Shown: piece by piece, positions 7,219-46,750 of the stretch
Layout of the letters: each line of letters starts with the position of its first letter
Position numbering within the stretch: the stretch's first letter is position 1
From: Squalus acanthias
Taxonomy: Eukaryota
Direction of reading: 5' to 3'
Length of the DNA stretch: 47,019 nucleotides
NCBI GenBank assembly: GCA_030390025.1
Contig: CM059453.1
Span: 6,092,982-6,140,000 of the forward strand
Notes under the pieces: model-generated
Seen by the model: only the letters and a program-made list of their open reading frames with translations
Databases searched by the model: none
What the model was told of the DNA's origin: nothing
Made by a program: the position numbers and the translations under genes

Positions 7219-7261
7219 ATGAGGGGTTGCTTGTTTGCTTTTCTCATGATATTAACAGATG
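7219..7261 (+). CDS. Gene A signal-peptide exon (MRGCLFAFLMILTD/V)
   Basis: ATG at 7219, hydrophobic core, phase-1 donor G|GTAAAT at 7262; joins the V exon in frame to give MRGCLFAFLMILTDVVCSAQ. Confidence 0.8.
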
Positions 7262-10200
7262 GTAAATTTATATTGTTTTTAATAATTTTGGAAAAGTTGA
7301 TTTATATCTTTTGGGTAAGGAACTGGAAAATACCGAATATAAATGATTTTTGGTGATTGATTTTAAAACTGGTGAATTAGGAATTTCATGATTGTTCAAC
7401 ACACCCCTTGTTGGTGTATTATTGTGTTTGATTACCTATTCAATTAATATTTAAATATATGACTTTTCCGTAATATTTATTAATATTATAATGCACATTT
7501 AAGAACATTTTAATTCATATTTATTCAAAATGCAAGGGAGAATCAATAGATTTTATATATATATATAGATGAATAATTCAATATTTATTTAATGTGTTTT
7601 TATTGGGCATTGGCTTGTTTGTTAACGGGTATGTATTTGGTTTTTAGATGAGTATTAAATATGTATATTATTGGTTCATAAATCTCCTACCAAATAGGTA
7701 TTCCAATAAACATTTTAATACATGTTGTGATTGGTATTGAATGAGTATTTTAAATGATTTTGAAAAGGCCTTAACTGATACTTAAATTGTGATGGGCGCT
7801 TTTTTTATTCACCATGGGATGTGCGTGTCGCTGGCGAGGCCAGCCTTTATTGCCCATCCCTAATTGCCCTTGACAAGGTGGTGGTGAGCTGCCTTCTTGG
7901 ACCGCTGCAGTCCTTGTGGTGAAGGTACAAACATACTGCATGTTTGTCAATTAACACGTACTTTAATGGAACGTTAAGATGTTGCAAAGCATTTTAAATA
8001 GAATCTGACATGGGTTCTCATGTTTCTTTCTCTCAGTTGTTTGTAGTGCTCAATGCTCTGTGGTGATGCCAAAAGTTGTGTCGGCGGTTTTGGGTTCATG
8101 TGTAGAGATCCCGTGTACATTTGATAATCTCGTCTATTACACCAACCCAAGCGGGACGTGGATAAAGTTGGGCCCTGGTCCTGGAAACCGCGGTGTCTCC
8201 ATTATCTATGATTCTAAACATCCACACAGGAAGCATTATAACTATCGTGGAAGAGCTGAGTTTAAGGGCAACATTGCAGCTGAACAATGTTCCCTCCTGA
8301 TAAAGGACATCAGGAAGAGTGATGAGGGTACATATCAACTCAACTTGAAATTCCCTTTGAGCATCTATACTAAAAACATCGCACTGACGATGCTCAAGTC
8401 TCTCTTTCTATTTCGGGTGAGTTTTCCCTTGGTTCCTTTCAGTACATTTTCACTCCAGTGCTTCAGTCTGATTCAACCTATGTGCAAAGTGGGCACATTT
8501 TATAAAGTCGCTGGCCGATCTCAAGGGGTAGTTGAAACAGAGGGTGCAAGGATACTGATAATGGACGCAGTGGTTCATATCCTAAACACAGCAGTATCTA
8601 GACATTACAGCTGTAAAACAGGCCGTTCGGCCCTGCCAACCGTGTGGCTGTTTATCCTTCATATGAGCCACACTCCGAATCGCATGTGTCTGCTCAGTTC
8701 CCACATCTCTGTATTGCAAATCCCTTCAATCACCTGTCGAACCTATTCTGAAATGTTCACATGAGGATGGAGGTGCAACTTTTTGATGGGACGCAAGACT
8801 GACGATGTTGATCTACACCTGAAATAGAAATCAGTTGCTCATTATTTCCAGACCCGGACGGCAAGTTCAAATTCTGCCTCAGTCTGGTTCTATCCCCTTT
8901 GTCCCGTTGCTTTATAAGTTTAAGCACTGCAGTTAAATCATCCCAAAATCTGTTGTAGCCCAATGAGGTCTGGCTCCAAATTTAAAAGCTTCCTTGGTGT
9001 TGCTCGTTCCTCATACCAGCCAGAAACCACGCGAATCTGCCATGTAGCGACCCCATAGACTTGAGTCCCAAACAGACATTCTTATTCCATCTGTGAACTA
9101 ACTGCGGTTCTCTTTAGAATCTTGACTTTTATATTTAACATCACTTGCCATTAAACGCAGGACTCCAATAACATTTTCATGCCCGTTTCCACTGACGGTG
9201 CTGCTTCACATTCTTATGACCCTGGAGCCCCAAATTTCCCCTCTATTCCACATCACCCAGCTTTCCACCGTTCAAACTACTATCTACCATCTCATATTCA
9301 CTGACACTGAGTTGTATGTGCCTCATATTTCCCCATTCTGCTCTCTCGCTCCATGAACCCTTTGGAACTCCCTTTAGTACTCAGAGTTATTTACTGGGAG
9401 ACGTAATTTGAAGTTTTGCTCGGGTGTCAAACTGGCGATATAGGATGAGTCTTTCATTTGTCAACACCCCATATTTCCTTTTCTGTGTAATGCAATGGAA
9501 AGTAAAAACAGTCGGGTTTGTATAATAGGAGTACGATGAGATATTGCCAGTTTTACACCATTTTCATTTGTTAACCTTAATCCCCTACTTCTGCTAGTAA
9601 TTACTGTCGGGACATTTGGACAACACTATCTCCAGCGCTATACACAAATAATCTATGTACAAAGTGAATAGAAGCATTTAATTAACTCAACCTTTTGGGA
9701 CACCGTCCTCAGTTACCAACCATTCTGAGCAACTGCACTTAACGGCGACTCACTATCATCCCTTCCAAACAGTTGTATTGCAATTTCTGCCTTATCCTTA
9801 ATTCCAAACTTTTCCAATGATCTTCTGTATTTACCGTCGTTAATGTCTTGCTGGTTACATTTCTATTTACTTTTGTGTGAAGCGTTTTAGGACGTTCCGA
9901 AAACTTTAAACGCACTTAATAAATGCAGTCTTATTTCTTGCCTTTCCCTATTCAGAGCTCAGTTACCCCGCTTTTAATTAGATCTGAATTCCAAAGTACA
10001 TTTTACAGTTATGCGAAAGTGAGTTAAAATTATGATATATTTGTTCATTCTGATCCCACGTCACCAACATGCTATTTCTCCTGAAGCTTTCATGAGATTT
10101 ACACGCGAGGTATCTGCTGTGTTTCTCAAGCACAATCTATGTTACCTGTCGTTTTCAGTTCTGTTCATTTCTTGAGCATCATCTTTCTATATTGACCTTT

Positions 10201-13200
10201 CTTTGCATCGTAATTTTGGGCCTCTCTGTGTCTGCATTAGTCACAATCTCACTGGTAAGTGCTGGTGCAAAGATAGGCACATGAAATAATCAAATATTTG
10301 TGATACTTGTAGAGATAACCTTGATTTTAATTCCTGCGTGCAATATTGATCTAAAGGTACCAGATGCATAATTTGAATAGTTCAGGTGATAAAGCGACTG
10401 ATATATAATTACCAGAAGTTATGTATTGCCCGGTGAGGCATTAAACTACCTTTTAACTCCAAGGCGTAATTCAGAATAGCGAACTCACTTGCAACACTTA
10501 GCAGACAAAAAATTACAAAATGCATTCCTTTTTAAAATTCTTTAGCAGTTTGAGTTGAAGCAGATCACTTGCCCGTTTTAAGGTTGAAATGAACGTAACA
10601 CGCGCGTTTGCTCCTACTCTTATAGAAAAGCCAGAGATTTCAGGTTATGTGGAACTGACCGCTGGACAAACTGCAATACTGAACTGTTCCCTCATCCACA
10701 ACTGCCCGGAGGGCAACCTGCAACTGAAGTGGATTAATTACAATGTGTCCCTGCCTCTTCCATGGTCTACTCAAGATGGAGCAGAAATAATCAATGCACG
10801 TTTTGGTTCTTGGAGAGTTTCATCCTTGATCACCTTTACTCCATCATCTGCTCATCACGGAGCAGTTCTGGGATGCACAATTTTAATTGGTGGTGTCCCA
10901 ACTCCTTCTCCCCAAACTCTTACCTTGAAGATTAAGTGTAAGTGTCTGTTCTAAAGTTAATAGATCTAACCTACCGGACAACGGTTTTTATTATTTATAC
11001 TTCCATCATAAACAATTTAATAAGGGTTTAGGACCGCATCAAAGAATGTATTGAAAAAAGATGGACCTCAGTACTCTGAGTTTTCGCCTGGAAAATTAAT
11101 GAATCGAAATGCTTCTCAAGCCAATTCTCATAGCAATGCTATTTTAGGAAGATTCTGACCTATAAATGAATGCTGGGGGCTGCCAGAGTTTGGCTTATGT
11201 GATTGTTAATTCGTATTCTAAGGACTTCCAGTGACGTTATGAGTGTAATCAGTCATGAAAGCATTAATAAAGGAAATGGCGAGTAATCTAAAGCTGATCT
11301 CTACTATGATCTCCGATCGGGCTTCAGAATTGGCCTGAATGAGGTACCGGTGTTAACGTATATGCGCCACCAAATGGACAAAAGGGGAAGGGTGGGGTAC
11401 ATTTTCCAGGAAATATACATTATTTTATAACTTTAAACTGATCGACAATAAAGGTTAGATCTTTTCATTTCATAACGACCCAATATCAATATTTCATTAG
11501 GAGCGAAATCATGCTTACTGAATATTCACGTTTTACATTAATGCCTATTTCAGATGGACTGGAAATAACATTCGTCAATTCGTCTGTAGCAGCTGTGGAA
11601 GGAACCTCCTTATTATTATACTGCACGGCCTGGGGGAAGCCTCTGGCCAGCTTGAGATGGGTGAAAAATGGTGAAGAGATCAGCAGATCTTCCACTGGTG
11701 AACTAAAGCAAATATTCCACAACATTAGTTCTGAGGATGACGGTGAATATTGGTGCATAGCTGAAAATGCCCAGGGCACCACCAACCGCTCCACACGGAT
11801 TTCTCTACAATGTAAGTATGTATGAATTTTCAATTAGATAGTAGGCTTTCATTTCACGAATTCTGAATTAAGTTCCAATTTCCTCTTGCCTGCTTGCTGG
11901 AAGGCGCAAATGTGCACGAGTTTGGGATAGTGGCACCACTTCCTGCGGAAATAGCGCATAAGAATCTCGATGGTTCCAATAATGGAAACCAGCCTGGCCT
12001 CTAGCTCAGTTTGACAGGATTGGAAGATGTCACAATGTGGCATAAATGCATCATGTTGTACATTTATGAGGTTGCGACAGGAGCACATTTACTGGGACCT
12101 TTACTCTGAATCTAAATGTTCATAACTATTAATGGTAGTCTGAAAAAAGCAATTTTCCAATTCTTAAAACGCCAATCCCACATTTGATAAGCACAAATTC
12201 TCCCAACATTATCTAATAAAATGGTGTTCAGCCAACTTCTTTTACTTGTATTAATGTTGAGTTAGGTCCTTTGAACTATCGCCTTGTAAGCCGGACATTT
12301 ATTGAAGAAACACGTCAGTCCACCACAAACGAAGAGGATTCAAATAGTGCCTAAAGTGCAGAAATTGAAATTAATTGACCTTTTAAAACAGTGACGGGTG
12401 AATCACGTTTGTGGGTATATGATATATAATTAACACTCTGAGCTTGCTCCGTCTGAGGTTCCCCCACAACATTTGTCAGGACAAGTTTGGTTGGACTGAA
12501 CACTCATTGGGTTTAATATGAAATTATTCCTTACGTGCGCTCACCTGTTGCAAGTGAAAATATAATAAGCCACCAACTGGTGCAACAAAGGCTGCTTCAT
12601 ATTAAAATATAACCGAGCAGAACTATTATGGTTAGTTCAACTCATGACTTAATTGTACTTCGACACTGCAACTGTTTTCATGATCATTTACTACTGATGT
12701 TTCCATCTTTTTAGATAAACCCACAATTTTAGCAGGCCCGACATGCAACAGCTCTGATAATTGGACGAATTGTAGCTGCCGGATCAGAGCCAATCCAACG
12801 GGAAACATTACATGGGGCCTCAATGGGAGAATCCTCACTGGGAACACGTCAGATGTGGAAGTAATCTCCTGGGCGGTGAACAGTCATCTCGTGGAGAGCT
12901 CCCTGAGATTGACTCACCCAACTGGAATCGGAAACTTGATCTCATGTGTTGCAGCAAACGAGCACGGGGATTCTGTCAGTAAATACCAGCTCCACTCTAA
13001 GGGTACATGTTTAATTTATCTGTAATATAATACTATGAGGGATTTGGTCCATCATGGTCAGTCACTAACTGAACGGTGTTAGTGTCAGCAAATACTAGCT
13101 CCATTCAGCAGGTCCATACGGAATCTATCTCTAATTAGGGTAAAGACCACTTCCAATCAGTGGTCAATCATCAACTGAGATGTGAAGTCGGCATTATCCA

Positions 13201-16200
13201 TTTTAACTTTCAGTCTTCTGAAACTGGCTCGGTTTAAATTTTCAAGATAACATGGAATTATCTGAGCAACAGAAGTAGCTAGTGATCTTGGAAAACAAAA
13301 TCTTCTGAATTAAGATAAAAACTTCAGAAAATCCGAATTACTCTCGCAACTTAATAGCGAACTGCAATCTACCCTTTTGTATATACATGCTCATTTCTAT
13401 CTTGTTCAGATGCATTTGAGTATATAAAGCCGATATTTAAATATCGAAGCGAAATTGAATTAACTCTATTGATTATAAATCTTACCGCTGTAACTGGCGA
13501 CCTTGGCTGGCATGCACTCTGATTGGATTTTGCCCACTGTTTTTCCGAGGGTGGATTGTCATTTGAACTTAATTTGTCACTTGTGGTTTTTACATCAGCG
13601 AATCGTAAATTATTTATTTCAAATATACGCCAGGCAGCAACACAGGAATAAAATGCCTTTGCACAAGGATCATCAGGTTGAGACAAGCGTAGTACCTAAC
13701 TTTCCAATAGCTTTGAGATCCGAAAATAAAGGTAGCTTACTTCCTCACACTCACAAATGGGCTTCCAAGATTGTTGTTTAAACCCAATTATCTAATGTAC
13801 AGCAATGGTTTTTACCAACTTTTTAGGAATATTCTCCAGGACAATAGTCCCCATAATAGGAGGAGGAGCCACTGGGCTTATTATTCTAATTGCAGTCGCG
13901 GTCACGCTCAAGATACAAAGGTATGTGTGATTCTTAATTACATAGAATGGAGTTTTAAAGGTGACCCTGCATCAGAATGTCCGTGTATCAAAAACTTGTT
14001 TAAATTAGTCTTCCATGAGTACAGTGTGCATCTGCCTAAACCCATGTATAAAGTAGAAGGGTCAATCATCGCTGACCAGTCGCTCGCATCTCCCAGCATC
14101 AAATACAGAGTAATATTAGAGTCTGCTTGAATCAGGCTGTCTGTGCATTCTTCCTGTTCCATTATTGTGGTCTGTTTCCTTCTGTTTAAACTGGAATTTT
14201 TTGGAACTTCTGAGCGCTGGCGCGCTATGTGCCAGGGAATGTTTATCCCTCCCGTGTAATCTGGATTAAGTTTGCAGCATGATCAAAGAATGGGCATAGA
14301 ATCCCGTTCAGTTTGTTTCTGCTGCTGGTTTTATGGGGGAAACCTCACACAAGCCTCCTTGCCATGTCACGCTCTCAGCATAACACTACACGAAATTGAT
14401 ACTTATGTATTAACAATCAACTCGTCCAACATACAGGTAAACAACAAGCAAATATTAAAAGTAACGTGACACATATGTTTACAGTATTCTTACCAGGGAC
14501 TTAAGCTATTTGGTCTGACTAGCTCTCTTTGAAAGCTCTAGACAGGCTCCCTGCTTTTTTTAGAAAGCCTGATAGTTACCGTCAGGAAGGTGACTGGCTC
14601 CAAGTGAGTTCAAATTAAAACCAGTTCGGTTTACAATGCGCTGCCAATCAAATTTATCCTTCAACAACGCACGCTCGAAGTTTACAATTGAAATCTATGA
14701 CGTTGCTCCTCGGTTAGGCACCTCCCCTCAACAAACCAATGATTCGGCAACAACCGGAACAAAATGAGCCTGAAAACTCTTGTGACTAGTGTTAGCTTTT
14801 AACCCTTCATGTACCATGATATAAGTAAAGAAGGCATTTCCATGCTTAATAATATCAAAATGCTTCTTTCAGAGATATGAAAGAAGGATCTCGAAACCAT
14901 TCATTAGAAATATTGATTTATTCCTGTTTCTAACTCCAATGTGCTGAAGTCGTCGATCCAATAATACTGCGTTTACACATTGAAACTCTTGCATCTGCTA
15001 CTTAGCCAGGTTGAAATCATTAATAAACCTCCTATGTCCGTTATTTATCATACTCAACTTCCACCTAGAGCAAGCAGCACCGCGCTGTTAACGCTTATCA
15101 TAGATAAAGTAACATGTTCCCTTTTGAAATGTAGGCAGGTGGGAATTGAAAAGAATTGGGTATCGGATCTGGTCTGGGCTAATCAGGAGACGTAAAAGAC
15201 GCAAGTCTCGATTGACCTGCATCGCACAGGCGCAGTGTGCTTTCACTACACATTCCAGTTAATTATGGAAGTGCCTCATTTGCATTTGTTATTATTCAGG
15301 CAGAAGCACGGGGAAGCTGCACGTGTCTCCGAAGCACACGATGATTTGGTGATTTACAGTACGGTGCAGAAGGCACTAAACGCTGAGGTAAGTGATGCCA
15401 AGCTGGAGTGACAATTGTAGGATGTTTGGTGTGCTTTCAACCAGCAAGTGATTCATAACGGGCAATACCCAACAGATAAACGGGAGTTTCAGAAACGTGT
15501 TGGCCTTTAAGGGAGGATTAGCCTCCTCACGTCGCGAAGAGTGCAACAGAGCTGCAGACTCTACATGTAGTGACCTACTAAATCCAATTAGGGAGTATTT
15601 CTCACCTTGGCGTTCCTTCTCAAACCAAATTCTTAATATAAGAATGCGTTTCCATTGTCATCTTACCCCCTACCAATTAGATCTCACCTGTTAAATGTCC
15701 AACAAGATCACAAGGTGTCAGCGACACCAGAGGGGATAACCATTGCAGTTAGGCAGGGTTATGTGCAACTTCCGAATTGCATCTTGCTGTCAAAGTGTTC
15801 CCCTTACTCCTCAAATTTGACTAACAAGGTTGTGACTTCATGCTTCGCTCCAGCATTTCAACATCTAATCTAGGCTGGAACTTCATTTCAGCACTGAATG
15901 AGTGCAGCATTACCGGAAGTCCCATCTTTAGGATTAGATGTTCAAACAAGCAGCGTTTGTTTCTTCTTCTGCAGGCAAGCAATCACATAGTCCGATTCTG
16001 GGGATGAAAAAGAGTTCTCCAAGTGCCTTTGCAAACATTTCTCCCTAAATGCACAGCAGCTGCATCTGATTAATTCGGCATTCATCTAATTAACTGGTTG
16101 TTGCATTTTTTCTACAACACCGGCTGGAATCTTAAAGTTATTAATTGCATAGCAGCGCGTCGGACTTAATAATCATAGAATCATACAGCCCAGAAGGAGC

Positions 16201-17290: not shown

Positions 17291-18689
17291 AAGTTAACAG
17301 GAGTTATACTGTCAGAGCGGACAGTCTTGAACATGTTAATGGCTGAGCGCACCTGATGTTATGAAGTAAAACAGACACCATTGCATTTCAATAAGGACTA
17401 TGAGAATGGAGGTCATTCATAAAATTGGTGTCATATTTTAAATTACGTTCACAAAGTCGAGTTCATTCGAATGCAGTTGAGAGTGTACATTTTCATCAAT
17501 GTAACTTTGCAATATTTTTCTCTATTCTGTGAAAATAATAATTTTACAAACCATTTCTAACATCGTCTTTGTCTTTTGATCTACGGAAATCCATTGACCC
17601 ACAGTATGAACCCTAACAAGCGGGGAAAAGTTTGCCAAAAAGGATTGCAACGAAACACAAGTTACAATAACTTTACTTTCTGGTGCGCCTAAATTAGGTG
17701 CTAATTTAAAGAGATTACTAATTAAGCACATATACGATTCCTGGCGATAGATCCATACAATTTTATGTTGTCGGCCCTGGAATTCTGGTGTCTGAGAGGC
17801 TAGATTATGCCGTCGTAATCCCTTTGAAATACCCGACAATTCCAGATTTCCGCATGCTTGTGCATTTGTGAATTCCGGAACTTGCGTTCTCCCAACGTAT
17901 GTGTTAACAGGCCATCCACGGGGGCTCTGATAAAGCAATCGCCGGGGCAGTGTCGGTCTATTTGCCCAGCGACTGGCCAGCAATTGCCCACGTAAGTCTC
18001 ACATTTGATGCAAGTAGTCGTAGGGGTTGTTTACATCAGGGTAAGGGCATATCTAAGGTTTAAATAAAATATTTAAAAATCCAAAATTATGCACACACAC
18101 TGTATTAAATGAGTTCATGCAAATATTGGCCCGGATTATAGTTTTGGTGATGTATGCAATTATTATCAAAAAAGTAAATTTTTATTGGCCCTGAATTTGC
18201 GGTCGGAGGCGTACTTCTGGTGTACACCTCCAACATGCGAAATAATTCCGAAGTTACCCCCTAGCTAGACAGCCACGGAGAGTTCGGTTCCTGTGCCTCC
18301 AGGCATACGCCAGCTGAAGGCCCACTGATTCCAGGGATTCAGGAGGTCCACAAGCGACCTTCGGATCACGTGGTCCCGGTCCTCCAATGAGATTGGAGGA
18401 TTCCATTGCATCACTTCAGAACGGTCTCCCCCAAGGACATGCATTGGAATGCCCCCAAAATTACACAATTTAGACAAATCTAATAAATATAAATGTTGCG
18501 ATTTTCCAATTAATTAAAATCACCCAATCAAACCAAACACAATAAAAATGTTATTAATTTGAAAAGTAATTATAAACATTTTAAGCAGAGCCAATATTTG
18601 CATTAAGTAATTTTAAGTGTTTGTGCATCATTTTTATTTGTGGCTGTGCTACGCTAGTTAACTAGCAAGAAATATAAAAACAGATAATA

Positions 18690-24112: not shown

Positions 24113-24300
24113 NNNNNNNNNNNNNNNNNNNNNNNNNNNNNNNNNNNNNNNNNNNNNNNNNNNNNNNNNNNNNNNNNNNNNNNNNNNNNNNNNNNNNNNN
24201 NNNNNNNNNNNNNNNNNNNNNNNNNNNNNNNNNNNNNNNNNNNNNNNNNNNNNNNNNNNNNNNNNNNNNNNNNNNNNNNNNNNNNNNNNNNNNNNNNNNN
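24113..24300. other. Assembly gap (188 N), preceded by a GACA/GATA microsatellite
   Basis: Run of N; agacagac...atagatagactgatagatag at 24064-24110. Confidence 0.99.
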
Positions 24301-24479
24301 CAGTATATTATCAGTTACATCCCTGCCGCAAAACTGGTGTTGTGGAACAGCCAACCATTATCGAACCCAGTATGATTTGGTTAATATTAATGGTCATTAA
24401 GATTATGTGGTTTTAAAATGGCCGGTAAATCAATAGAAACAAATTCCACCCTGAGTACAAATTAAAAATCTACAACATC

Positions 24480-31405: not shown

Positions 31406-31453
31406 ATGAGCTGCTTTGATTTTTCATTCTGCTTGCCCTGCGGTTCCCTGAAG
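31406..31453 (+). CDS. Candidate gene B signal-peptide exon (out of phase by 1 nt as assembled)
   Basis: ATG 31406 and consensus donor AAG|GTAAGT at 31454. One extra T in the T5 run (31420-24) gives MSCFDFFILLALRFPE/AAVSGQW in phase 1. Confidence 0.55.
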
Positions 31454-34400: not shown

Positions 34401-37400
34401 CCATCGCAAGTTACGCTGGGAAGGGATTGGCGGGCCTTCTTCCTGAACTGGCACATTACTCTTAGTAGGAGTTTGATACAAGTGAGTGTCTTGCAAAGCC
34501 ACGTGAGAGGGAAGTCAAGATTCAGCCAGGTTGTCATATATAAGCCAGACCGGGTAAGGAGGTCGGATATCGGTCCTGATAGGATATCACTGAACCAGTT
34601 GTATTTTCGCCACAAACCGACAGGTTCATGGTCACCTTTAACGATACCAGCTTATTAGTTCAAGATATTGGGCCAGAAATTCGGCTCTCCAGCTTCCCGC
34701 GGGTGCAAGCCTCGAGCGCGTACTTATCTACCGCGCCTGCCGTTGTGCTTTGGGCCCGCGTGAACTTCGGCTCCAGGGCCTCCTGCAGCTGCCGGCGCGC
34801 AGTGCTTGCGTATCCCAGGGGCGCAGTTAGTTTAAAGCGTCTCCTGGGATCACGTGGGCCATTGAGAGCCAATCGGAGCAGGGATTCTCCATTCATAGAT
34901 TTTGACAGGAAGACCTGTCAAATCTAATAGAGATCGGCTACAAAACCTCACTTAAAACTTCAAATAATTTTTTAAATCATCACATTTTTAAAATATCTTA
35001 TATTACATAAATTAAATACTTTAAACATAAATTTTAATTTTGAAAAAAATAATTACACTTTTTAACGGTGTTAAAAATAAACTTACCGTTCTTTAAAGGT
35101 TGCAAAAAAGATAAAAGTGTTGAAAATTTGTTTAAATAGTACTTAATGCACCACTTACCTTTTTAAAAGCACGCCTTGCGCCTCCTTTTCTCCCCGCATA
35201 TTCTCCGTACTTACCCTCACTCCAAAACCTGTAAAAAAAAAACGAAAGTTCGCTGCGTGCGCGCTGCCTCTCCAGCATACAACGTTGACCCTCGATCCCC
35301 TTCTTTCACGAGAACGGAAGTTCCAGTTTCCCGTGCACGCGCAGTGCATGCGCGAGACCGGCACTTCCGGTGGCCCTCCGGTGTGTACTCACCCGTGGAG
35401 ACCCGAATTTCTGCCCCATTATTTTGTGAATCTGAATTTAAATTCTCAAACCGCCGCGGTCGGTTCACGTTCTCTGGATTAGTTGACCAGGCCTCTGCTT
35501 TACTACCCCGTAACAGAGACATCACACTACAAATGATTAACTTGATTGACCTGAAGGAGCTTCTGTTCCGCAATTCAAAGATCAGTTCTACTGGGAGGCC
35601 TTGAAATAAGAAAATAGGACAATTTGCAAAATAATATTAGGGGGTCATTCAGTCAAATTATACAATTATTGTATATACATATAAAGGTAATTCGAACAAG
35701 TGGTCAATCCAATTCACAGACTTGTCAATGCGAGGTTGCACGGGAATTCAAATCCACGCCCTTTCCGATTTCCCCTTCATTAATTTAAAATTGAATAATA
35801 CCATGACAGGCTTGTAGAAACATTCCCCGAGATACAGTCCAGTGCGAGGTGTTCAACAGCAGGAAATCGTATATTATAAAATGTGCAATTTGTTAAATAT
35901 ATGTAATTTACGTGTGAAGTAAGGCCCTTAGACGGATTGGCGTTCCCATCAGATGAAGGATGTCAGTTTTGGGGGAATGGGACATTTTCAACTTCAGGCA
36001 CTAAATGTCGACAAGAAATGTTGCAGATCAGTTGGAGCTGGGATGAGATGCAGATTAGCTACCCCTCTACTCAGACGCACTGATGTGCGAAGTCCAAGCA
36101 GCAAAGAGAATTGTCCGCATGCAGCAACTTGAGATTTTCCATTTCACAACACCTTTCCATTTTGTGAGTTGCGCCACTCCACTGTAAACTGCCTGAACTC
36201 ATTTCAAGTACAAGGATGAAGCCTTTCACCCCCTTCAATTTCGGCGGGGTTCGCACGGGCTTGAAGGGATGAATAGCCTGCTGCTTTTCTTATGTTCCTA
36301 TGTTAGGCCTGGCCTGGATTAAACGTTCGCCTGTAATCCACTCACCCAACTTCGTCACCCAGTCCGAAGGAATCAAGCTACAAATTTACTTAGATTTGAT
36401 ATTCCAATGGCGGTGTTGTGTGCGGGAGATCAGAAACAAGGCAGTGAGAGTTTCTACCATCGCCATGTGTCACTAAGATAAGAGACATGGTGGAGACATT
36501 GCCTATGATCACCATGTGTCCGTGAGTTTACAAACATAGAAGAATGGTTTCCTCCAGTATCTGCTTCTGAACGCATCCTAAGATAGGCAAAATATACTGC
36601 TTGAATATTTTGGTCGGAAAATAAATCAGAAGTGCCTCTCCCCTTGGCCTCTCAGTGTCAGCTGTGCCGCATTGGGTAGCACACTCGTCTCTGAGTTCGA
36701 AGGTTGTGGGGTCAAGTCCCTCTACAGGGATTTGAGCACATAAATCTAGGCTGACACTCCAGTGCAGTGCTGCGGGTGTGCTGCACTGTCAGAGGTGCTG
36801 TCTTTTGGATAAGTAGTTAAACCGAGGCCCTCTCTGCGCTCTCAGCTGGACGTAAAGGATCCCATGGTATTATTTCGAAGAAGAGTAGGGGAGTTATTCC
36901 CGGTGTCTCAGCCAATATTTCTCCCTCAATCTACATAACTAAAACAGATTATCTGCTCGTTATAACATTGCTGTGTGTGGGAGCTTGCTGTGCGCAAATT
37001 GGCTGCCGCGTATCCCACATTACAACATTGACTACACTCCAAAAGTACTTCATTGGCTGTAAAGCGCTTTGAGACCAGTGGTCGTGAAAGGCGCTATATA
37101 AATGCATGTCTTTATTTCTTTCTCCGGTAAAGGGGATCAAGGAGCTCTATCATTACATTGCATCCAGTGTTCATCGTTATACGTGAAGATTATTCAGTGA
37201 AAAGCACCAATAATATTAATTCTACCTCTTCATCTTATAGGGAAGCCGAATATATCAGTGACGGAAGAAATCATTGCTGGACAAGCAGTGACCGTAACAT
37301 GTTCGCTCGTTCAAAGTTGCCCTGATGCCAAAATTGATTTCAAGTGGATTGAGGACAGCAGTTTTATCGCTGCGGTTTCGGCTACTGAATTTGAAGACAT

Positions 37401-40400
37401 CGACACCGGCTTTGACCATCCGGATTGGAAAGGGTCGCAGAAAGCTTCCTCTGTGCTGACGTTCGCAGCCTTGCGTCAGCATGACGGTAAAATGCTTGGA
37501 TGTGGGATTCTGGTTTCAGGACACGCACAAGGGATTCGAGAAATGGTTACATTGGACGTTCAGTGTAAGTATCGGCTACCGGCGTAAAAAATACATTTAT
37601 GGTTGGGACTGCAAGTGTCACAACAGCAGAACTGTGCAATTCATCCACTGTCTCAGTAGACTGGAAGAAATAAATAGGGACGAAGTAACCTAATTATATG
37701 GAAATGCAGCTGCATGCACTTCCGTTTCCTGTGTCTCGTGTCAGTTTCGGCGACAGTCAGGCTGCAGCAACTCAGGCTGAAACCAGTATATGTGGAATGC
37801 CGATGGCAGTCACTAGATGTCAATTGTACTGCCGGCTGAACTTTCCTGAGAGTCCCACTAAGAAAATGGCAAAGGAGCTCTATGGGTGAGTGCTTCGAGA
37901 TCGGGGCTGGAGTGGGCCATACAGCCTCTCGAGCCTGCACCGCCATTTTAGCAAGGCCATGGCTGAAATTCTACATTAACACCACTTCCCCGTCCAATCC
38001 CCTTATCAATTGATTCTTTAGTGCCCAAACATCTCTCGATCGTAGGCTTATACCAATTTAATTATAATGCCCATGGAAGAACATGGGCGGTAGCGGCCAC
38101 CCACTTTACACCCCGCCCGATTTTGTTTTCTGCTGCCTACAATGGAAGTGAAAAAAGAGCGGGGTGTCTACTTAATATCGAGCCTTTGGCACTGTCTCTA
38201 AAAGCACTCTCACCCCTATAAATTTTAACTAGCCCTCATTTTCCACTGAGAGGAAGACTAAAAATGTTTACTAGCAGAAGCATGTCAAATTAGTACCATC
38301 CTCAACACCGAATCATATGGCGCAGGAATCGAACCCGCTCCAGGCAGCTTCAGAGAGTGCAAACAAGAGGTCTAAATGCTGAGTTGAAATGCAGCGGAAT
38401 GCGCAATTCCGGCGGGTGTGCACGCCCCCACTGCATTTTGTGTTTTGGAAGAACATAAAGGCTTACTGCCCTACATGACTAACCACCGTATTGGTTGGTA
38501 TACATATATATAAATACCACTCTTCACAATGTGGCATGTCAGATTGTTAGTTAGGTGCCACGTTACAGACGCATTACAATGGTACGGGCCAGTACCGTCA
38601 GGCGCTAGGTCGTGGAATGTGTTGAAAAATGTCTACAAAACAGCAAACTGAGTGGGAGCGTTTTGAGAAGTTGTTCAGACTGACAGAATGTGGGACGTGA
38701 TTTCGCTCATAGATCCATTCTGGGGGCACTGTTGTTTACCGCGTACACAAGAGAGGAATTGGGGCCACAGTGGGGGGGGGGGCAAAACTGCACATGATCG
38801 GTGAAGCAAAACAGACAAACATGAATGGGCATTCCATTTTACACCGTTGACTCGAACAGAAATCGGGCAGGTGTCAAATGGGCTGCTAGTTCAGTATCAC
38901 TCATTGTGCGCTATTGCCAAAGATCAATCACGTCCGCATGGTGTGTACATTTGTAGATGACACTCCACTGGGATATACAGATAATAATGAGGAGGACTGC
39001 ACCAAAATGCATGAAGGCATCACCAGGCTTTCAGAGTGAATGGAAAAAAAAAGAATAACATTCAATATAGCGAAATGTGAGGAGATTCATTTTGGGAGGA
39101 GGCCAGTAGAAAAGGACGAAACTAAATACAATGGAGGATCAATACAAATCAGCAAAATAAGCTGTGCTGTGTGCACTTCGGTCTCCATGTCACAAAAAGG
39201 AGATTGAAATATTGGAGACAAGGCAGAAACGATTTACAAGGAAGTTACCAGAATTGAGAGGCTGCAATTGTCAGGTAACGCTTAGCAGTCCGGTCCTATT
39301 TCCGTTGTCAAAGCTAAAACTAAGAGGGGTGACATGAATCTTGTCCTTCATGTGGAAATGACTTATGAAATAATACTGGGCGGCCTGCTGGTGGCGCTGT
39401 CCAGGGAGAGTATAAATACTCGGACATGGTCCCAGCTTGCTCAGGACATTCTTTAACAAGAACTAGGGAAAGACGCAACTAGATCTCCATGTTGAAAAAC
39501 AGTTGATTAAAGCTTTGTTTAACGCTTAGACCAAGGGATAATAGTTTTCTTACGTCAAGGGGATCTGATAGAAGCCGCTAAAATTATGAAGGTTGGTCTT
39601 GGATAAACTGTTTTTGCTTATTGGTGAGTCGTGTACAAGTGGGTATGAACGTAAGATCAACAAAAAAAGAGATCAAATAAAGAATTTGGCAGGAAGATTA
39701 TTTACAACGAGCGAGACGAAAATGTGGAACTTGCTGCCTTATGCAGTGGTTCAAGCAGATAGCATTGTTGCATTAAAGGCACTGCTTACATGAGAGGGAA
39801 GGGAATAGAGTTATATGAGGGCAGGGTGAGACGAGGTAACTAGAGTCTGAAGACGTTTGTGCGGAGTATAAACAGAGGCATGGACGGTTTTCTCTGAATG
39901 ACCTGTTTCTGTGCTGCAGATTCTAAGTAATCGTTCTAATTTCCCATTAGTTTGCCAATGGCTATCGAGTGAAATTGGGAACTAGATTATCAAGTGAAGC
40001 CTGAAGTTGTAGAAATTTTATTCACGCAGGAATTGGAACAACGAATATTGTACCACAATTAAAGAACAAGATACAGAGCTTCATAACATTTGAAAGGGAA
40101 TTAGTTACGTAATTGAAAAAGGAAGATTATAAAACGATATTGGGAGAGGGGCATGCAAAGGGATTAGAATAGGGTTAGAGTAGACAGATTCCATGAACGA
40201 GCTCGCACAATCCCTTGCAAGATGGTCGAATAATTGGCAATCTTTACGGTTATATGTAGATTTATACTGTTATTCATTTAAATTGATTAAAACATTGATT
40301 GAAACTTAAGAAAGTAGTCAAATATCCCTGCTCCTTTTGTACAGCAGTGGAAAGGGGAATATAGTGAGTCGTATCTCTGTGTATGAACAAAATACAGATT

Positions 40401-43400
40401 GGAACCTCAAAGGCAGAGACTAGACAAGAGGATTGGTTGCTAAGGGACTCACATATCTGAAGGCTGGGAAACTGAGATTTGGAGGCAAGATGCGAGGCCA
40501 GTAATAAGTTGGTATTCTTATAACAGAAGCGCGCACTCTCCTGCGAAGGACATGTTGTGCTTTCAGTCAAGATAAGAGATGAGGTTTGACAATATGTGGC
40601 AACTCTGAAGATGGGAATGGGATTAACCACTGAGGGATAGGAAAATAAATGTGTACGTGCACTACAAGTTAGCCGAATAGCATGAAAATACAGCCTGTTC
40701 CCTCCCAAAGGTTAGAGCGCTGAGGAGAGTCGGATGTCTTGAAGCAGCTCACAAAGGTCAAGTCTGATCATCTTGAGACGACGCAGAAAGACCAGTGGCG
40801 TAAGAAAACTATGAGGCACGTGGTCTAAGCGTTAATCAAAGCTTTAGTCAACTGTTTTTCAACATGGAGATCTAGTTGTGTCCTTCACTAGTTCCTGATA
40901 AGGAATGTCCTGAGCAAGCTGGGCCCATGCCCGAGTATTTATACTCTCCCTGGACAGCGCCACCAGCAGGCGGCCCAATATTATTTCACAATTCATTTCC
41001 ACATGAATGACAAGATTCATGTCAACCAGGTTGTATTAACATCTTGTCATTTAAGACAATACTGTAGACAGTCGTATAAGAACAGTACTGTTATTACTCA
41101 ATATATATATTAAAGCATGTCATTTGAAACCACTCAGGCCGCTATCACGTGGAAATTATTGTTGCAGGACTAACAACCCTTTGTTCTGACCGTAACCGTC
41201 TGCTTTCATATAATCTTCCTCTTTAACAGATCCACCCTCAAAACCAATGGTAAATTCCTCGCTGACTGTAAGAGAGGGTAGTTCCATACTGATATACTGC
41301 ATCACACAGAGTAAACCAGAGTCTCGTTTACAATGGATGAAAGACGGTGTCTCCATTAAGAGCTCCTATTCAAACAATGTGCTGACAACGAGGTTTCCTG
41401 ACATACAATATGAAGATGAAGCAGAGTACCAGTGCGAGGCAAAAAATCAGCATGGCAGCGTGAGCAGCTGGACGAACATCACTATAGAATGTGAGCCTAG
41501 GAATTTATCTTCCTTCTTTGAAAACAAACACAATGTCCAATAAATGACTTTTTGTGATATCCATCTAGAAATTGTTAGGTAGTAATGCCTCTGTTAAGAA
41601 GCTGGTGAAAGAAAATCATGCAACGCTTCCAGCATTGGTGCATTATAAGCACAGACAGCAGTTTCCTGCATATTGGGCCAAAAATTGATCCCGCTGCGCG
41701 AGAGTACGCACTGCGTACTCTCGCGTATTCTCTCTCCAATTGCCGGTTTTCTGCATGCCCTGCGCATGCGCTGAAAACCGGCACTTGGTCTTTGGAAAAG
41801 GGGGCGGTTCCTCGGTGCATCGCGTGCGCGCTACAGGCTGCGCGCACGCTATGCACTTAGTGCTTTGGACGCGCAGGTAAGGACGGAAGATTTTAGAAAT
41901 GGAAAAAGGAGGAGTAAGACCCACTTTTAACAAGGTAAGTAGTGAATTAAGTATTTTTTTGAATTTTTTTTAACAGGTATATCTTTTTTAGAGACTTTAA
42001 AGACAGGTAAGTTTATTTTTATAACTTTTTAAAAGATTTTAAATTTTTTCAAAAATTTAATTTTTTATTTAAAATGGTTAATTTATTTAACTATACTTAT
42101 TTTATTAATGTGATGTTTTTTTTAAATTTAATTGAGGTTTAGCTGTTATTTTGGGGGGGTGTATGATTCATAGCTTTCACAAAACGTATGTGAAACTTAT
42201 GAATGGAAGATGGTGTGCTGCCATTGGCTCTAACTGAGTCACGTGATCCCACAGCTCGCACGAATTCACTACGCCGGTGGGATACGCAAGCACTGCCCAG
42301 CTGATGTCTGGAACATCAAGTTCGTGCGAGCTGGATCTGAAAAAGCCAACGCGGAGTGAGAGATCGCGCCTGCTCCTTACCCCCGCGGGAACAGAGCGAG
42401 ATCAATTTCTGGGCCATTATCTTTTCAAGCCATCAGAATTTCGTTAAAAGAGAAAAAATATGTCGTTTCAATATTTATTTATATTTCTGTTCAATTCATA
42501 AAATAACTTTAGCATTCAGATTTACAATAATCTGAATCTGGCTGAAGAGAAAGTAGGGTCTACAACAAATGAGACAGAGAGCGAGAAAGAGAGCGAGATA
42601 TATTGACCCGGTCCATATAAAGCTTATTTGCTTCCAGTGGTCGGTTAGTTTCAAAGAGATCAGAACAACGAGTGACAGCGATAAAGACAGGGAAGCACAG
42701 TGGACTTTCGCTAGATGCAAATGATTCAACAACGTTTAGAAAGGAATGGGAAACAGAGAGGCAAGTTATACAAATAAAGACGCCAGTGTATGATTAAGAA
42801 CTAAATGGAACATCTGATGTTTAGAAAAGTACAGGGCTCAAAAAAAGGTACCACAATGTTCCAGATGAGAATGCTATGCTGCACTCTGCTCCCTTGCACA
42901 CGAACAGTAACGATTCCTGCGGTGCATCACGGTGGGTGCAGGTCTGAATACAACGCTGTTGGACATTCCTTTGATTTAGAATACAATGCTCCATTGGGGA
43001 ACATTGAACTACAAATGCAATTTATATTGCATTCAATTAAGGCGATGCAGAAAATTGCACGATACCAGTTTGACACAGAGTTTTAATTTCAACTGCAGCA
43101 GGAATGGAACAAAGTGTTCAGCATTCGCAAAGAAACTTGTTGGTAAGAAAACATGTTATAGCTAGACATGAATACTTTACTGAATTAATTTTGAAGCCAT
43201 TGGTCAATGTAATTTTCCCAATATTACTGTATTGGAGTCTTTCTAGAAGTACAGCTGCAACAAAGTCTACAAATCTCTACTCTATGATTTCGATCAGTTT
43301 CAATGTTGAACCAGTTTTGCATTGACTTAGCATTTGCGACTTTCAAAGTATTGGATTATTGCATTTTAAAATGCTTTCTGCTGCTCATCGAAGTTCTAAG

Positions 43401-46400
43401 AGTCACGGACTCAATGGTTGTAAAGCCAATGAATTATTTTTATGATAGTATGTTCTTATAATTGGTTAAATCTGGCTCTGTTTCAGATGCACCACGGAAA
43501 CCAGTGGCCAATTTGTCTATAGTAACATTGGAAGGAAGCTCATTCTTCATATATTGCAAAGGCCAGGGAAACCCACCGGTCACTTTAAGATGGATGAGAA
43601 ATGGTGAAGAGATCAGCACATCTTCCACCAGTGAACTGAAAGAGATATTCCACAACATTAGTTCGAAAGAAGACGGACAATATTGGTGCACTGCTGAAAA
43701 TTACTTGGGCACTGCAAGAAGCTTCACAAAGATTTCTGTAGAATGTAAGTACAGCAAAGTGGTTGGGATATCTGGGTTGGAGTGACGTTGTTTCATGGAG
43801 TCCAAGTACGTTACTGGCGCTCCCTTTAGGATGCTTGGATTCCCATGGCTGTGTCTATGCCAGAGTGTGATGGAATACTCTCACTTGCCTGGATGAGTGC
43901 AGCTCCAACAACACTCAAGATGCTCGACACCATCCAGGGCAAAGCAGCCCGTTTGATTGGCGCCCCATCCACCAACTTAAACATTCACTCTCTCCACCAC
44001 CGGCGAACCGTGGCTGCAGTGTGCACCATCTACAAGATGCACTGCAGCAACTCGCCAAGGCTTCTCCGGCAGCACCTCCCAAACCCGCGACCTCTTCCAC
44101 CTAGAAGGACAAGGGCAGCATGCGCATGGGTAAACCAAGACCTCCAAGTTCCCCTCCAAGTTACACATTGTCCTGACTTAGAATTGTATCGCCGATCCTT
44201 TATCGTCGCTGGGACAAAATCCTGGAACACCCTCCCTAACAGCACTGTGGGGGATCCTTCACCACACGGACTGCAATGGTTCAAGATGGTGGCTCACCAC
44301 CACCTTCGCAAGGGCAATTAGGGATGGGCAATAAATGCTGGCCTCGCCAGCGACGCCCACAAACCATAAACGAGTAAGAAAAAGCACTACTTGCCATTGA
44401 CAATGGTAGCCAAACTGAAAGCAGAAGCACTGGCCAGCAAACTGAAACCCGAATGTATCGCAAAGTATTTCTAACCCTAGATGCAACCTTCCGGCATATT
44501 GAAACTGCCATTATCTCTGAGAGATGAGAGGAATTTGCAGTTGTTTACTATTATTGTCGCTAACTCGCGTTGTTCAGGTAACGCCTTTCATGATGTTACT
44601 TGTCACATTCTCAAGGGTTAATTAAATATTTTTCCGAATAGAATTGCAAAGCACATTTGTCTCAGACACATTCTGTGTCTGGTTTTGTCAAAACATTCTA
44701 TAGCCCTGCCGTTAGTTAAATTTAAGGAAGAGTTTTATATTTAACTTTATTATAGATCCACCGAGAATAGTGGAACAACCTCACTGCGCAAGGGCTCAAA
44801 ACAGCATAACATGTGCGTGTACAATGAAGGCCAATCCACCAGTAGAGCACATTAAATGGAGCCTGGATGGCCGTAACATCACGGGGAACAGTTCCGATTT
44901 TGAAGTCGCTTCTTCAGCAATGGACCGCAACCTAATGCTAAGCACACTTACACTTAACAAGGAGCTGGGGCTTGACCATAACGTCTCTTGTTATGGAACA
45001 AACAAACACGGTGTCACTTTCTCCACGATTCTGCTCTATTTACCAGGTAACTTCTGCTTGTATTTCACTGAGTAAAACTGGAACGGAGTAGATTTGAAAA
45101 TCGCATTTCTCTTTGGTATCTGTTTGTTTCTTGCATTATATATTACTCATCTGCGGTAGTGATTCGGTCTTACGGCAATAGTGTAAAATGCGCGACATCA
45201 GCGTGGCGTGCTGTTAAAAGCCTGTCTAGATTTCCTTTGACATTGCCTTGAATAGAAATCTAAATTTAATCATCAGAAATTAGTGGCTAGCGTGCCTGGA
45301 ATTTCCCAATGTGTACATCCAGCAGTAAATGCTCCGACACGATAACGTGTGTTCTGAAAATGCATCCCCGGATGACCTAAGCAGTGCCCAAATTGATGGT
45401 CTTTACAAAAAAAGTAATCTTGTGATACGGGGGTTGCTGGTGTAAGTTCTAAATGATCTCTTAGAGTTCTTGGACAAGACACAAATAGACAGCAGTCAGT
45501 ATCTTTGAGCAATAGATCAAGATTTATTAAGCTTACTGCCTTATATACTTAACAACAGGCGATAGTTTAACGAGTAGCTCGCAGCCCATGGTCTCTGGAA
45601 CCCCTTGAACACTGGTGACGTCGTCTTCCATCTGTTCCTTTAACTTCGCAGTAGATCTGTGTAAAGTTGTTCTTTGAGTATCGAGGATTTAACCCTTTTC
45701 TTATCAAAAGTTCGTTTGGCCAGTGTCCATATGTGGGCTTTAACAAATTCACCTTTAATAATTGGTTCTAATGGCCAAAATACCATTGTCACTCAGACGA
45801 CGGGTAGTATCTTGGCCCCGACTTTAAAGTGTTTTTCCGACAACTCTGCCATGTTCATCGTTATCTTGTTTGTACGTTCTTCACGTCATTCGAGTTCACC
45901 TTATCTCTCTTATTTCTAGCTTCCCTGGTACAACCAGTACAAGGCCTCGTTAGCTGCGTAAGCTGCGTGCAGCCTGTTATCAGAACTAGTCAAGATTGTT
46001 TCTGACTGTCCTTGCGGTAATATTTTGATCAAGCCTGAGCATTTTAGTTACCCAGGGAATTATGGGTAAGATTAGTTGGTCCAATGGCTGCAATTAAATA
46101 TTTAAATTATGATTCTCAACTACTCAGGACCTCTAAATACTAGTCTTTCGTAAACTGGTAAGACTGGCAGACTTTCCCTTGTTGCCCTTGGTAAGGTGGC
46201 GGTGGGCCTTCTTCTTAAACATCTGCAATCCAGGTGGCGATAGTTCTCCCACCCTGCTGTTAGCCAGGAATTCTTGGATTTTGACAAGAGGCCATAAAAG
46301 ACGCAATAAATTTTCAAGTCAGGATGGTGTGTGTCGCAGAGAAATTTGAAGGTGATAGTGTTCCCATGCACCTCTTAAACTTTTCCTTCTAGGTGCTGGG

Positions 46401-46750
46401 CCTCGGGTTTGAGAGGAGCTGTAGTAATATATTATATGTCAGAATATTATAGAATATCATATTCAAACGAGGGAAATATGTATAATATCATATGATTGTA
46501 TACAAGGTACTAACTGATACGATTTTATATTTAGCGTTATTTTTGAATATACATGAAGTTGCTCCCACAATAGAAACTCTTACCGATTTTACTAGATCTG
46601 ATTTGATGTTCCTTGCAACATACTTAAATCTGCTAATATTATTTTCTGATATTTAGAAAGATGGTTTGGGGAATTGGCTGTCGGAATCGGAGCAGCAGTC
46701 GTGATTTCCATTGTTCTGATTGTTATCTTTGTGGCCAGGAAGTTCATGAA
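31406..46750 (+). CDS. Gene B: five-Ig Siglec/MAG-like receptor, 3' partial; join(31406..31453?,33959..34315,37241..37564,41230..41490,43487..43744,44756..45046,46657..46750,...)
   Basis: Five phase 1-1 Ig exons (357, 324, 261, 258, 291 nt, all multiples of 3 and open) with GT..AG introns, then a TM exon. Domain order matches MAG D1-D5. Cytoplasmic exons lie beyond the window. Confidence 0.87.
32230..32600 (-). mobile_element. CR1 LINE 3' fragment
   Basis: Minus-strand ORF FFTPRVVMVWNALPE..VEANSIVAFK followed by the 3' tail. Confidence 0.85.
33077..33113 (-). ncRNA. Minimal type I hammerhead ribozyme motif (intact)
   Basis: AGUU-CUGACGA-A-AGGUC(UUC)GACCU-GAA-ACGU-U-AACU: helix I AGUU/AACU, helix II AGGUC/GACCU, palindromic ACGU helix III. 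Confidence 0.65.
33610..33646 (+). ncRNA. Minimal hammerhead ribozyme motif (helix III palindrome mutated ACGU>ACUU)
   Basis: agttctgacgaaaggtcttcgacctgaaactttaact. Confidence 0.5.
33959..34315 (+). CDS. Gene B V-set Ig exon
   Basis: TTTGTTAG acceptor, G|GTGAGT donor. GQWSVQMPKQLSVLVGSCVVIPC...YRGRS...KNCSFWIAGIRNEDEGEYYIA. Confidence 0.92.
34352..34650 (-). mobile_element. Degraded non-LTR retrotransposon-derived fragment
   Basis: ggatgcgggcgttactggcaagaccggtatttattgtccatc resembles the reverse of the 44320-44380 3' end. Confidence 0.45.
34670..35417 (+). mobile_element. ~750-bp MITE-like DNA transposon (PIF/Harbinger-like)
   Basis: TIRs GGGCCAGAAATTCGG / CCGAATTTCTGCCCC with a perfect ATT TSD; body similar to the 22195 element. 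Confidence 0.8.
36656..37122 (+). mobile_element. Full-length SacSINE1-like DeuSINE
   Basis: tRNA-like head, Deu-domain-like body (ggctgacactccagtgcag...ggacgtaaaggatcccatgg...cgaagaagag), tail gtaaagcgctttgag...aaggcgctatataaatgca. Confidence 0.8.
37241..37564 (+). CDS. Gene B Ig domain 2 exon
   Basis: TTATAG acceptor, GTAAGT donor. KPNISVTEEIIAGQAVTVTCSLVQSCPD...SSVLTF...HDGKMLGC. Confidence 0.92.
38940..39925 (+). mobile_element. Old CR1 LINE fragment interrupted by a short LTR
   Basis: FVDDT, KCEEIHFG and MWNLLP..VVQADSIVA motifs; tail gaatgacctgtttctgtgctg. Confidence 0.65.
39330..39557 (+). mobile_element. Short solo LTR (228 bp)
   Basis: TGAC...GTCA termini, perfect 5-bp TSD AGGGG, internal TATAAATA and ATTAAA. 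Confidence 0.8.
40796..41024 (-). mobile_element. Second copy of the same short solo LTR (229 bp), inverted
   Basis: Reverse complement of 39330..39557, with its own perfect 5-bp TSD ACCAG. Confidence 0.8.
41230..41490 (+). CDS. Gene B Ig domain 3 exon
   Basis: AACAG acceptor, GTGAGC donor. YPPSKPMVNSSLTVREGSSILIYC...W...DEAEYQCEAKNQHG. Confidence 0.92.
41675..42415 (-). mobile_element. ~740-bp MITE-like DNA transposon (PIF/Harbinger-like)
   Basis: ~21-bp imperfect TIR GGGCCAAAAATTGATCCCGCT / AGCGAGATCAATTTCTGGGCC, perfect ATT TSD. Confidence 0.8.
43487..43744 (+). CDS. Gene B Ig domain 4 exon
   Basis: TTTCAG acceptor, GTAAGT donor. YAPRKPVANLSIVTLEGSSFFIYC...EDGQYWCTAENYLG, like MAG D4 (YAPWKP...EDDGEYWCVAENQYG). 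Confidence 0.92.
43860..44382 (+). mobile_element. Non-LTR retrotransposon (CR1-group) ORF2 C-terminus and 3' end
   Basis: LAWMSAAPTTLKMLDTIQGKAARLIG...HSLHHRRTVAAVCTIYKMH...SWNTLP; related fragments at 7800 (-) and ~46180..46400 (-). Confidence 0.85.
44756..45046 (+). CDS. Gene B Ig domain 5 exon (MAG D5-like)
   Basis: TATAG acceptor, CAG|GTAACT donor. YPPRIVEQPHCARAQNSITCACTMKANPP...STLTL...VSCYGTNKHG. Confidence 0.9.
45421..46118 (-). mobile_element. Possible solo LTR (~700 bp)
   Basis: TG...CA termini (TGTGATA / ATTCTCA); on the minus strand TATATAA then AATAAA ~100 bp from the end; no clean TSD found. Confidence 0.4.
46657..46750 (+). CDS. Gene B transmembrane exon (ERWFGELAVGIGAAVVISIVLIVIFVARKFMK)
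   Basis: TTTAG acceptor, AA|GTAAGT donor (phase 2), 94 nt; hydrophobic stretch then RK. Confidence 0.88.

Follow-up and report, generated by a model that had tools for sequence, protein, structure and literature searches.

Siglec-type receptor genes without the essential arginine at a Squalus acanthias locus: probable members of a distinct shark/ray multigene clade

Introduction

What kind of receptor is encoded by genes that carry a Siglec-type V domain from which the essential arginine is missing? The question is raised by a stretch of 47,019 nucleotides of the Squalus acanthias genome (assembly GCA_030390025.1, contig CM059453.1, positions 6,092,982 to 6,140,000 of the forward strand; the whole stretch is hereafter called the window, and positions are counted from its first letter). 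It holds two immunoglobulin superfamily (IgSF) genes on the same (+) strand, both with a Siglec-type V domain: gene A (7219–17290) and gene B (33959–46750, running past the window end). In solved Siglecs an arginine of the F strand forms a salt bridge to the carboxylate of sialic acid, and neither gene encodes it. On sequence comparison we consider it probable (about 0.72) that the two genes are old paralogues belonging to a multigene Siglec-family clade of sharks and rays, distinct from MAG, sialoadhesin and the mammalian CD33-related Siglecs.

Loss of the arginine in otherwise intact Siglecs is established in primates (human Siglec-XII R122C, great-ape Siglec-5), where arginine-mutated Siglecs are by rule given Roman numerals, according to the available part of that work (PMC6288428). 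Fish regularly have Siglec-1, CD22, MAG and Siglec-15, without inhibitory CD33-related Siglecs, as described in a teleost study whose available text makes no mention of sharks or cartilaginous fish (PMC7226832), and the whale shark genome paper, in the portion available, just lists Siglecs among the gnathostome immunoglobulin (Ig) families. A literature search outside most subscription journals and supplements found no paper on a Siglec expansion or arginine loss in sharks or rays. Genes A and B belong to a type already described, Siglec-family receptors whose essential arginine is mutated, and stand in a clade that has been annotated just automatically.

Siglec fold of the two V domains

The sequence-only reading of this DNA had described two divergent same-strand paralogues with the cysteine scaffold of Siglecs, and every motif that it named is present in its place: the V exon of gene A (translated from 8036) reads GSCVEIPC, EQCSLL and DEGTYQLN, and that of gene B (translated from 33961) reads GSCVVIPC, KNCSFW and DEGEYYIA. 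As in Siglecs, both V domains have the B- and E-strand cysteines, no F-strand cysteine (F strands YQLN and YYIA) and the IPC motif, and an extra cysteine of domain 2 lies in HNCP (A) and QSCP (B). When the second Ig exon of gene B is aligned with MAG, its SCP stands on the MAG NCP, and a disulfide would be expected between the IPC cysteine of the V domain and the extra cysteine of domain 2.

All searches were run exon by exon, on exons never joined into spliced proteins. With phmmer against the PDB, the V exon of gene A retrieved sialoadhesin (6.6e-11) and MAG (3e-07), then CD33, Siglec-8, Siglec-10 and Siglec-5, and the V exon of gene B retrieved MAG (6.9e-09), sialoadhesin (5.7e-08), Siglec-5 and CD33; for gene B, one antibody light chain outscores the Siglecs, via two stretches. 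The Pfam families V-set and Ig_CD22 (PF24518) match both V exons, the Ig_CD22 score of gene B (27.0) equalling the cut-off of 27. An AlphaFold2 model of the gene B V exon, made from a 25-row alignment, has a mean pLDDT (predicted local distance difference test) of 90.5, and its best Foldseek matches are sialoadhesin (1oda and 1qfo; TM 0.81–0.83) and MAG (5lf5, 5lfr and 5lfv; TMq 0.79–0.83). Across the 25 rows the framework residues P11, C26, C82 and G95 never vary, and I24, W39, R70 and Y97 hardly do.

The further attributes of Siglecs, type I membrane topology, C2-type Ig domains and either tyrosine motifs or a charged transmembrane helix, were found in the form with tyrosine motifs. Gene A comprises the V domain, three further Ig domains, an uncharged transmembrane helix and a tail with two immunoreceptor tyrosine-based inhibitory motifs (ITIMs), and gene B comprises, within the window, the V domain, four further Ig domains and an uncharged transmembrane helix; the tail of a Heterodontus relative of gene B (P0162) carries IHYASV and SEYANL. 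The uncharged helices and the two ITIMs of gene A indicate inhibitory signalling, and gene A, by its tail, is built as an inhibitory receptor. Membership in a non-Siglec IgSF family (e.g. NITR-, CD300- or CEACAM-type), one of the outcomes that would have overturned the sequence-only reading, was ruled out, as the best named matches, the fold search and the nearest relatives are all of Siglec type. Sequence and predicted structure alike identify A and B as Siglec-fold receptors.

The arginine site

At the site of the essential F-strand arginine gene A has Asn (AAC, 8342–8344) and gene B has Ala (GCA, 34258–34260), and the absence claimed from the sequence alone is borne out by the alignments and by the predicted F strand of gene B. 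In the pairwise alignment the 'yyia' of gene B stands on the 'yyfr' of MAG, and a 48-row alignment shows N for gene A and A for gene B at a column occupied by R in 27 of the 32 rows that do not belong to the shark/ray clade described below. The predicted F strand of gene B (residues 95–103, GEYYIAATV) contains neither Arg nor Lys, so that modelling revealed no compensating basic residue on this strand, and no alignment places an arginine at the canonical position in either gene. Neither V domain would be expected to bind sialic acid canonically, as in human Siglec-XII; A and B are Siglec-like rather than proven lectins.

Relatives of genes A and B and the V-domain tree

A full HMMER scan with the V exon of gene B retrieved 312 proteins at E ≤0.001, 40 of them at ≤1e-10, and the nearest relatives are automatic RefSeq predictions from sharks and rays, named "MAG-like" or "Siglec". 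The V domain of gene A is 66% and 63% identical to those of two Heterodontus proteins (P0125 and P0110, respectively) and 53% identical to that of Heptranchias P0095, all three with Ile at the arginine site. For gene B the closest is Heterodontus P0162 (62–63%, Thr at the site), followed by Carcharodon P0004 and Cetorhinus P0152 (about 53%), which have Arg: these lamniform B-type relatives read YYIR. A word-indexed search with residues 1–125 of Carcharodon P0004 gave just 2 proteins among 111 candidates, P0162 included.

In the V-domain tree, A and B fall in a 16-row clade (support 98/96) whose 14 database rows are all from sharks or rays, with a B subclade (100/100) and an A subclade (96/88). 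Apart from it stand a sialoadhesin clade (100/99), a clade of true MAG (100/99; gecko, frog, ostrich, paddlefish and two further rows) and a CD33-type clade (100/100) of five rows with YFF(R/Q/W) and ERG/KRG motifs, taken from three proteins (Rhynchocyon P0089, MetaClust P0111 and P0142) and labelled by motif reading, without a curated name. The earlier description of the genes as MAG/Siglec-like holds for the Siglec part, given the PDB, Pfam and fold matches, and fails for orthology to MAG, whose clade excludes both.

The arginine site within the 16-row clade reads R in 8 rows, K in 1 and a non-basic residue in 7; the non-basic state needs at least 4 changes, and a tree grouping the seven non-basic rows was rejected by the approximately unbiased (AU) test. 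The sequence-only reading had proposed a cartilaginous-fish family of Siglec-like receptors lacking the arginine: a Siglec-type clade confined to sharks and rays was indeed recovered, and it is the description of that family as arginine-less that does not stand. From these sequences the arginine appears to be ancestral in the clade and to have been lost several times. The clade would have undergone birth-and-death evolution, losing the arginine repeatedly, and the A-type line would already have been without it before the window species, Heterodontus and Heptranchias split: the A-type loss is common to all three and so probably predates the divergence of those shark orders, an age that rests on the gene tree and not on dated orthology.

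Exon by exon, identity between A and B is 41% (V), 35%, 54% and 36%, low values that mark them as old paralogues and not recent duplicates. Compared with their relatives, both genes differ most in the V exon (52% against 61–70% for the other exons between A and Heptranchias, 58% against 66–73% between B and Heterodontus), a pattern consistent with faster evolution of a domain that faces its ligand. The V domains may bind proteins, pathogens or non-sialyl glycans, as the sequence-only reading proposed. That A and B are neighbours is taken from the scaffold; in Heterodontus francisci, a single 995,541-base contig carries the records of both A-type P0125 and B-type P0162, which hints at linkage of the two types in that species as well.

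Comparison with known Siglecs

The closest parallel is offered by the arginine-mutated Siglecs of primates, which, in the part of the source available (PMC6288428), likewise combine a V domain whose essential arginine is replaced with ITIM-type tails (here the ITIM tail is seen in gene A), and likewise show lineage-specific loss among paralogues that keep the arginine, with further disabling mutations in some copies (cf. the frameshift of gene A below). They differ from the clade of A and B, which is confined to sharks and rays, is not CD33-related and has Asn and Ala as replacing residues; moreover, the A-type loss appears common to several shark orders, and not to one species. The gene A layout of an ITIM and a distal tyrosine motif resembles that of the CD33-related group, but both genes lie outside the CD33-type clade and therefore do not belong to that group, as far as a label given by motif reading can define it.

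The shark/ray predictions named 'B-cell receptor CD22-like' are the nearest, weakly joined outgroup of the clade in the tree. The second Ig exon of gene B matches CD22 (5vkj) about as well as MAG (E 2.5e-04 and 1.6e-04, respectively), and both V exons match Ig_CD22, whereas the CD22-like proteins are much longer (1027–1282 amino acids) and have two V-type domains. The arginine is present in 9 of 9 CD22-type V rows, 6 of which come from proteins with a looked-up 'CD22-like' name. The Heterodontus, Heptranchias and lamniform predictions share their subclades and exon layout with A and B, at V-domain identities of 52–66%, and the arginine is missing from P0162, P0125, P0110 and P0095 (T, I, I and I, respectively); they differ in that P0162 has one Ig domain more than gene B, P0125 has one fewer than gene A and the lamniform B-type proteins keep the arginine. 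The extra Ig domain of P0162 (residues 245–333, between its second and third Ig domains) has no good counterpart in the gene B intron at 37565–41229, the best match being the next exon (45%).

Integrity of gene A

Of the two receptor genes that had been claimed, gene B has an intact V exon (357 nucleotides), and in gene A, as assembled, a frameshift disrupts the coding sequence. The V exon of gene A is 380 nucleotides long, which is not divisible by three. Its opening frame passes through the F strand and then reads IALTMLKSLFLFR, whereas KHRTDDAQVSLSIS is read in the frame that agrees with the relatives, with the strong donor (CGG/gtgagt) and with the phase-1 acceptor of the exon that follows; the counterpart of KHRTDDAQVSLSIS in Heterodontus P0125 is PVSLSVSEKPRISGF. 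The last V-domain strand is thus out of frame as assembled, and the reading frame would stop 11 codons into the next exon; all other exons of gene A are open. The shift must lie between 8372 and about 8391, because the second frame has a stop just upstream, and a run of five A (8372–8376) lies inside this interval. An alternative donor restoring the frame was judged unlikely: the sole phase-compatible GT, 4 bases downstream, has a poor consensus and would retain the non-homologous IALTMLKSLFLFR strand.

Public contigs with the same species label that cover 8296–8565 contain an additional base, at 8371 or 8373. With mismatches to the window at 13/235 and 19/271 letters, these contigs are paralogues or distant alleles; in run X1 the extra base accounts for a depth of 9 of 20.5, the remainder being without it. 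A real, recent lesion is the explanation that we favour by a modest degree, an assembly slip being somewhat less probable, and gene A, if correctly assembled, is probably a pseudogene of recent origin. At several exon positions within 8037–8140 and 10650–10683 and at 11711, most or all contigs from three DNA runs have another letter than the window, with a depth several-fold above that of the surroundings (for example T>G at 8089 in 79.9 of 91.3, 151.3 of 151.3 and 98.4 of 98.4), as would be expected if the genome contained many other close copies of these exons.

Weighing of the interpretations

Several points weigh against reading A and B as old members of a distinct shark/ray clade. The tree covers a single domain (48 rows, about 126 columns), with rows hand-picked after a first tree; the link of the 16-row clade to shark/ray CD22-like V domains is weak (75/73); and the group rejected in the AU test (p-AU 4.2e-05) had been named after the tree was seen. 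A search with paddlefish MAG (P0058) returned no cartilaginous fish among the best 120 of 283 matches, which need not mean that sharks have no MAG. The relatives are predicted RefSeq proteins, which are not proof of function, the run guessed to be RNA (X11) covers just a repeat in intron 1 of gene A, and the contig evidence neither confirms nor removes the frameshift of gene A. In addition, the HMMER alignment of gene A with sialoadhesin opens a two-residue gap and places the Lys of gene A (LNLKF) on Arg97, and a basic residue two places along the strand may act as a substitute for the arginine in this gene.

The last point leads to a reading in which sialic acid, or a sialylated lipid, is bound through a non-canonical site, such as this Lys. 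In its favour, gene B retains the N-terminal Trp, which aligns with the second residue, also Trp, of the sialoadhesin chain, and glycolipid recognition by human Siglec-6 was reported to be independent of the arginine in the part of the paper available (PMC10122656). However, the multiple alignments put the Lys of gene A in the column two places after that of the arginine, usually occupied by Glu; this Lys is the sole basic residue that any shift of the alignment brings to the site in gene A, and no shift does so in gene B, whose predicted F strand has no basic residue at all. Gene A, for its part, has Cys in place of the N-terminal Trp, and we regard binding of this kind as quite unlikely. A little less probable again is orthology of the two genes to MAG (Siglec-4), which would make them its representatives in cartilaginous fish, as the RefSeq 'MAG-like' names of several relatives would have it. 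MAG (5lf5, 5lfr) is among the best solved matches of the V exons and the best named one for gene B, which has the same five-Ig layout, the same interdomain cysteine context and a last Ig exon with a specific match to MAG domain 5 (E 1.6e-08, against 7.1e-05 for the match that follows); the paddlefish search, with no shark MAG among those best matches, also leaves room for it. Some kinship of gene B with the MAG architecture is, by these matches, apparently real. However, the PDB has no CD22 domains 4–7, and with a comparison set that lacks the membrane-proximal domains of CD22 the domain-5 match cannot discriminate between MAG and CD22. Both genes lie outside the MAG clade, lack the arginine and the F–G motif YYFR(G/A)DLG (A has YQLNLKFP and B has YYIAATVG) and belong to a multi-copy, variable and fast-evolving family, unlike the single-copy, conserved MAG; gene A, moreover, has four Ig domains and a tail with ITIMs.

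A different objection is that these are dead lectins of a decaying birth-and-death family, the arginine loss being a loss of function, gene A a pseudogene and gene B either on the same path or a ligand-blind signalling module. The frameshift that would end the gene A frame speaks for it, as do the leader of gene B, searched for in vain from the gap up to the V exon, its tail, which lies outside the window, and the arginine kept in 8 of the 16 clade members, which makes the loss a derived state. On the other side, the remaining exons of A and all five Ig exons and the transmembrane exon of B are open, with phase-consistent splice sites, gene B keeps the invariant framework residues and folds with confidence (at the pLDDT given above), and A-type and B-type relatives without the arginine are predicted to be full-length in Heterodontus and Heptranchias. 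We consider decay of this kind unlikely. For the A type in particular, persistence as a predicted full-length protein in both genera argues for an arginine-independent use of the domain.

Our preferred reading, that of two old paralogues within a separate shark/ray clade, can be extended, tentatively and at less than even odds, to a fuller proposal: a large family of inhibitory Siglec-type receptors with rapid turnover would have arisen within sharks and rays, as a functional counterpart of the mammalian CD33-related Siglecs that are reported to be missing in teleosts, and in this family one lineage, the A type, would have dropped the arginine before the modern shark orders diverged and have been kept since as a long-lived receptor for a ligand other than canonical sialic acid. 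The window alone is modest, with one intact V exon without the arginine and one gene broken as assembled; it is the locus together with its relatives in other shark and ray genomes that points to a separate, expanded, ITIM-bearing Siglec clade with repeated arginine loss. This repetition mirrors the evolution of the CD33-related Siglecs of primates, in lineages about 450 million years apart. If old lines without the arginine are indeed constrained, they would be natural experiments on a Siglec V domain without sialic acid.

Organisation of the locus

Both genes are assembled from phase 1-1 Ig exons (Table 1). The leader of gene A matches those of Heterodontus P0125 (E 1e-05) and Heptranchias P0095 (E 3e-04), and its membrane-proximal Ig exon is a paralogue of the fifth Ig exon of gene B.

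Table 1. Exons of genes A and B and the assembly gap, in window positions.
Feature	Position	Strand	Remark
Gene A leader exon (MRGCLFAFLMILTD)	7219..7261	+	phase-1 donor G/gtaaat
Gene A V-set exon, 380 nucleotides, frameshifted	8037..8416	+	Asn at the arginine site, AAC 8342–8344
Gene A second Ig exon (C2 type, extra Cys in HNCP), 312 nucleotides	10626..10937	+	phase 1-1; 61% identity to Heptranchias P0095
Gene A third Ig exon (I-set/Ig_2), 258 nucleotides	11554..11811	+	68% identity to Heptranchias P0095
Gene A fourth, membrane-proximal Ig exon, 288 nucleotides	12715..13002	+	69% identity to Heptranchias P0095
Gene A transmembrane exon (IVPIIGGGATGLIILIAVAVTL)	13827..13920	+	no charged residue inside the helix
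Gene A cytoplasmic exon with ITIM VIYSTV	15300..15387	+	
Gene A last coding exon with ITIM IVYAIV, further tyrosine motif CEYAAI and stop codon	17123..17290	+	
Assembly gap (N)	24113..24300	.	intergenic between A and B, or within the 5' part of gene B
Gene B V-set exon, 357 nucleotides, intact	33959..34315	+	Ala at the arginine site, GCA 34258–34260
Gene B second Ig exon (extra Cys in QSCP)	37241..37564	+	72% identity to Heterodontus P0162
Gene B third Ig exon	41230..41490	+	73% identity to Heterodontus P0162
Gene B fourth Ig exon	43487..43744	+	54% identity to the gene A third Ig exon
Gene B fifth Ig exon, MAG domain-5 type	44756..45046	+	5lf5 residues 396–479, E 1.6e-08
Gene B transmembrane exon, uncharged	46657..46750	+	cytoplasmic exons beyond the window end

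The assembly gap lies 6.8 kb past the stop of gene A (17290) and 9.7 kb ahead of the V exon of gene B, and on its left side it abuts a simple repeat of GATA/GACA type. No exon crosses it, and the reading frame across the gap is therefore no issue; no Ig-like match was found within 17290–33913. For the leader exon of gene B, an ab initio scan between the gap and the V exon gave weak candidates only, and the leaders of six relatives had no match in 24301–33958; the leader may be too diverged, or located in or before the gap. Just upstream of the V exon of gene B lies an inverted repeat (arms 32955–33255 and 33466–33764), and one of the weak leader candidates (33665–33704) falls inside one arm.

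Intron 1 of gene A contains a very high-copy short repeat (7747–7945), with a summed contig depth of 1.76–2.58 million in three DNA runs and of 75,451 in run X11, and a related piece is found in reverse in a gene B intron, at about 44033–44510. A direct tandem duplication of about 2 kb (about 27670–29600 and 29700–31400) contains open pieces that are 89–100% alike at the protein level, at offsets of about 1920–2033 bases. Open reading frames resembling long interspersed nuclear elements (LINEs), with endonuclease- or reverse transcriptase-like pieces, were observed at 25248–27665, 18844–20426 and 4687–5154, and on the minus strand at 32234–32596 and 16244–16456. A C-terminal LINE-like piece with RRNFFTQRVVNLWNSLPQ recurs in several degenerate copies between and around genes A and B.

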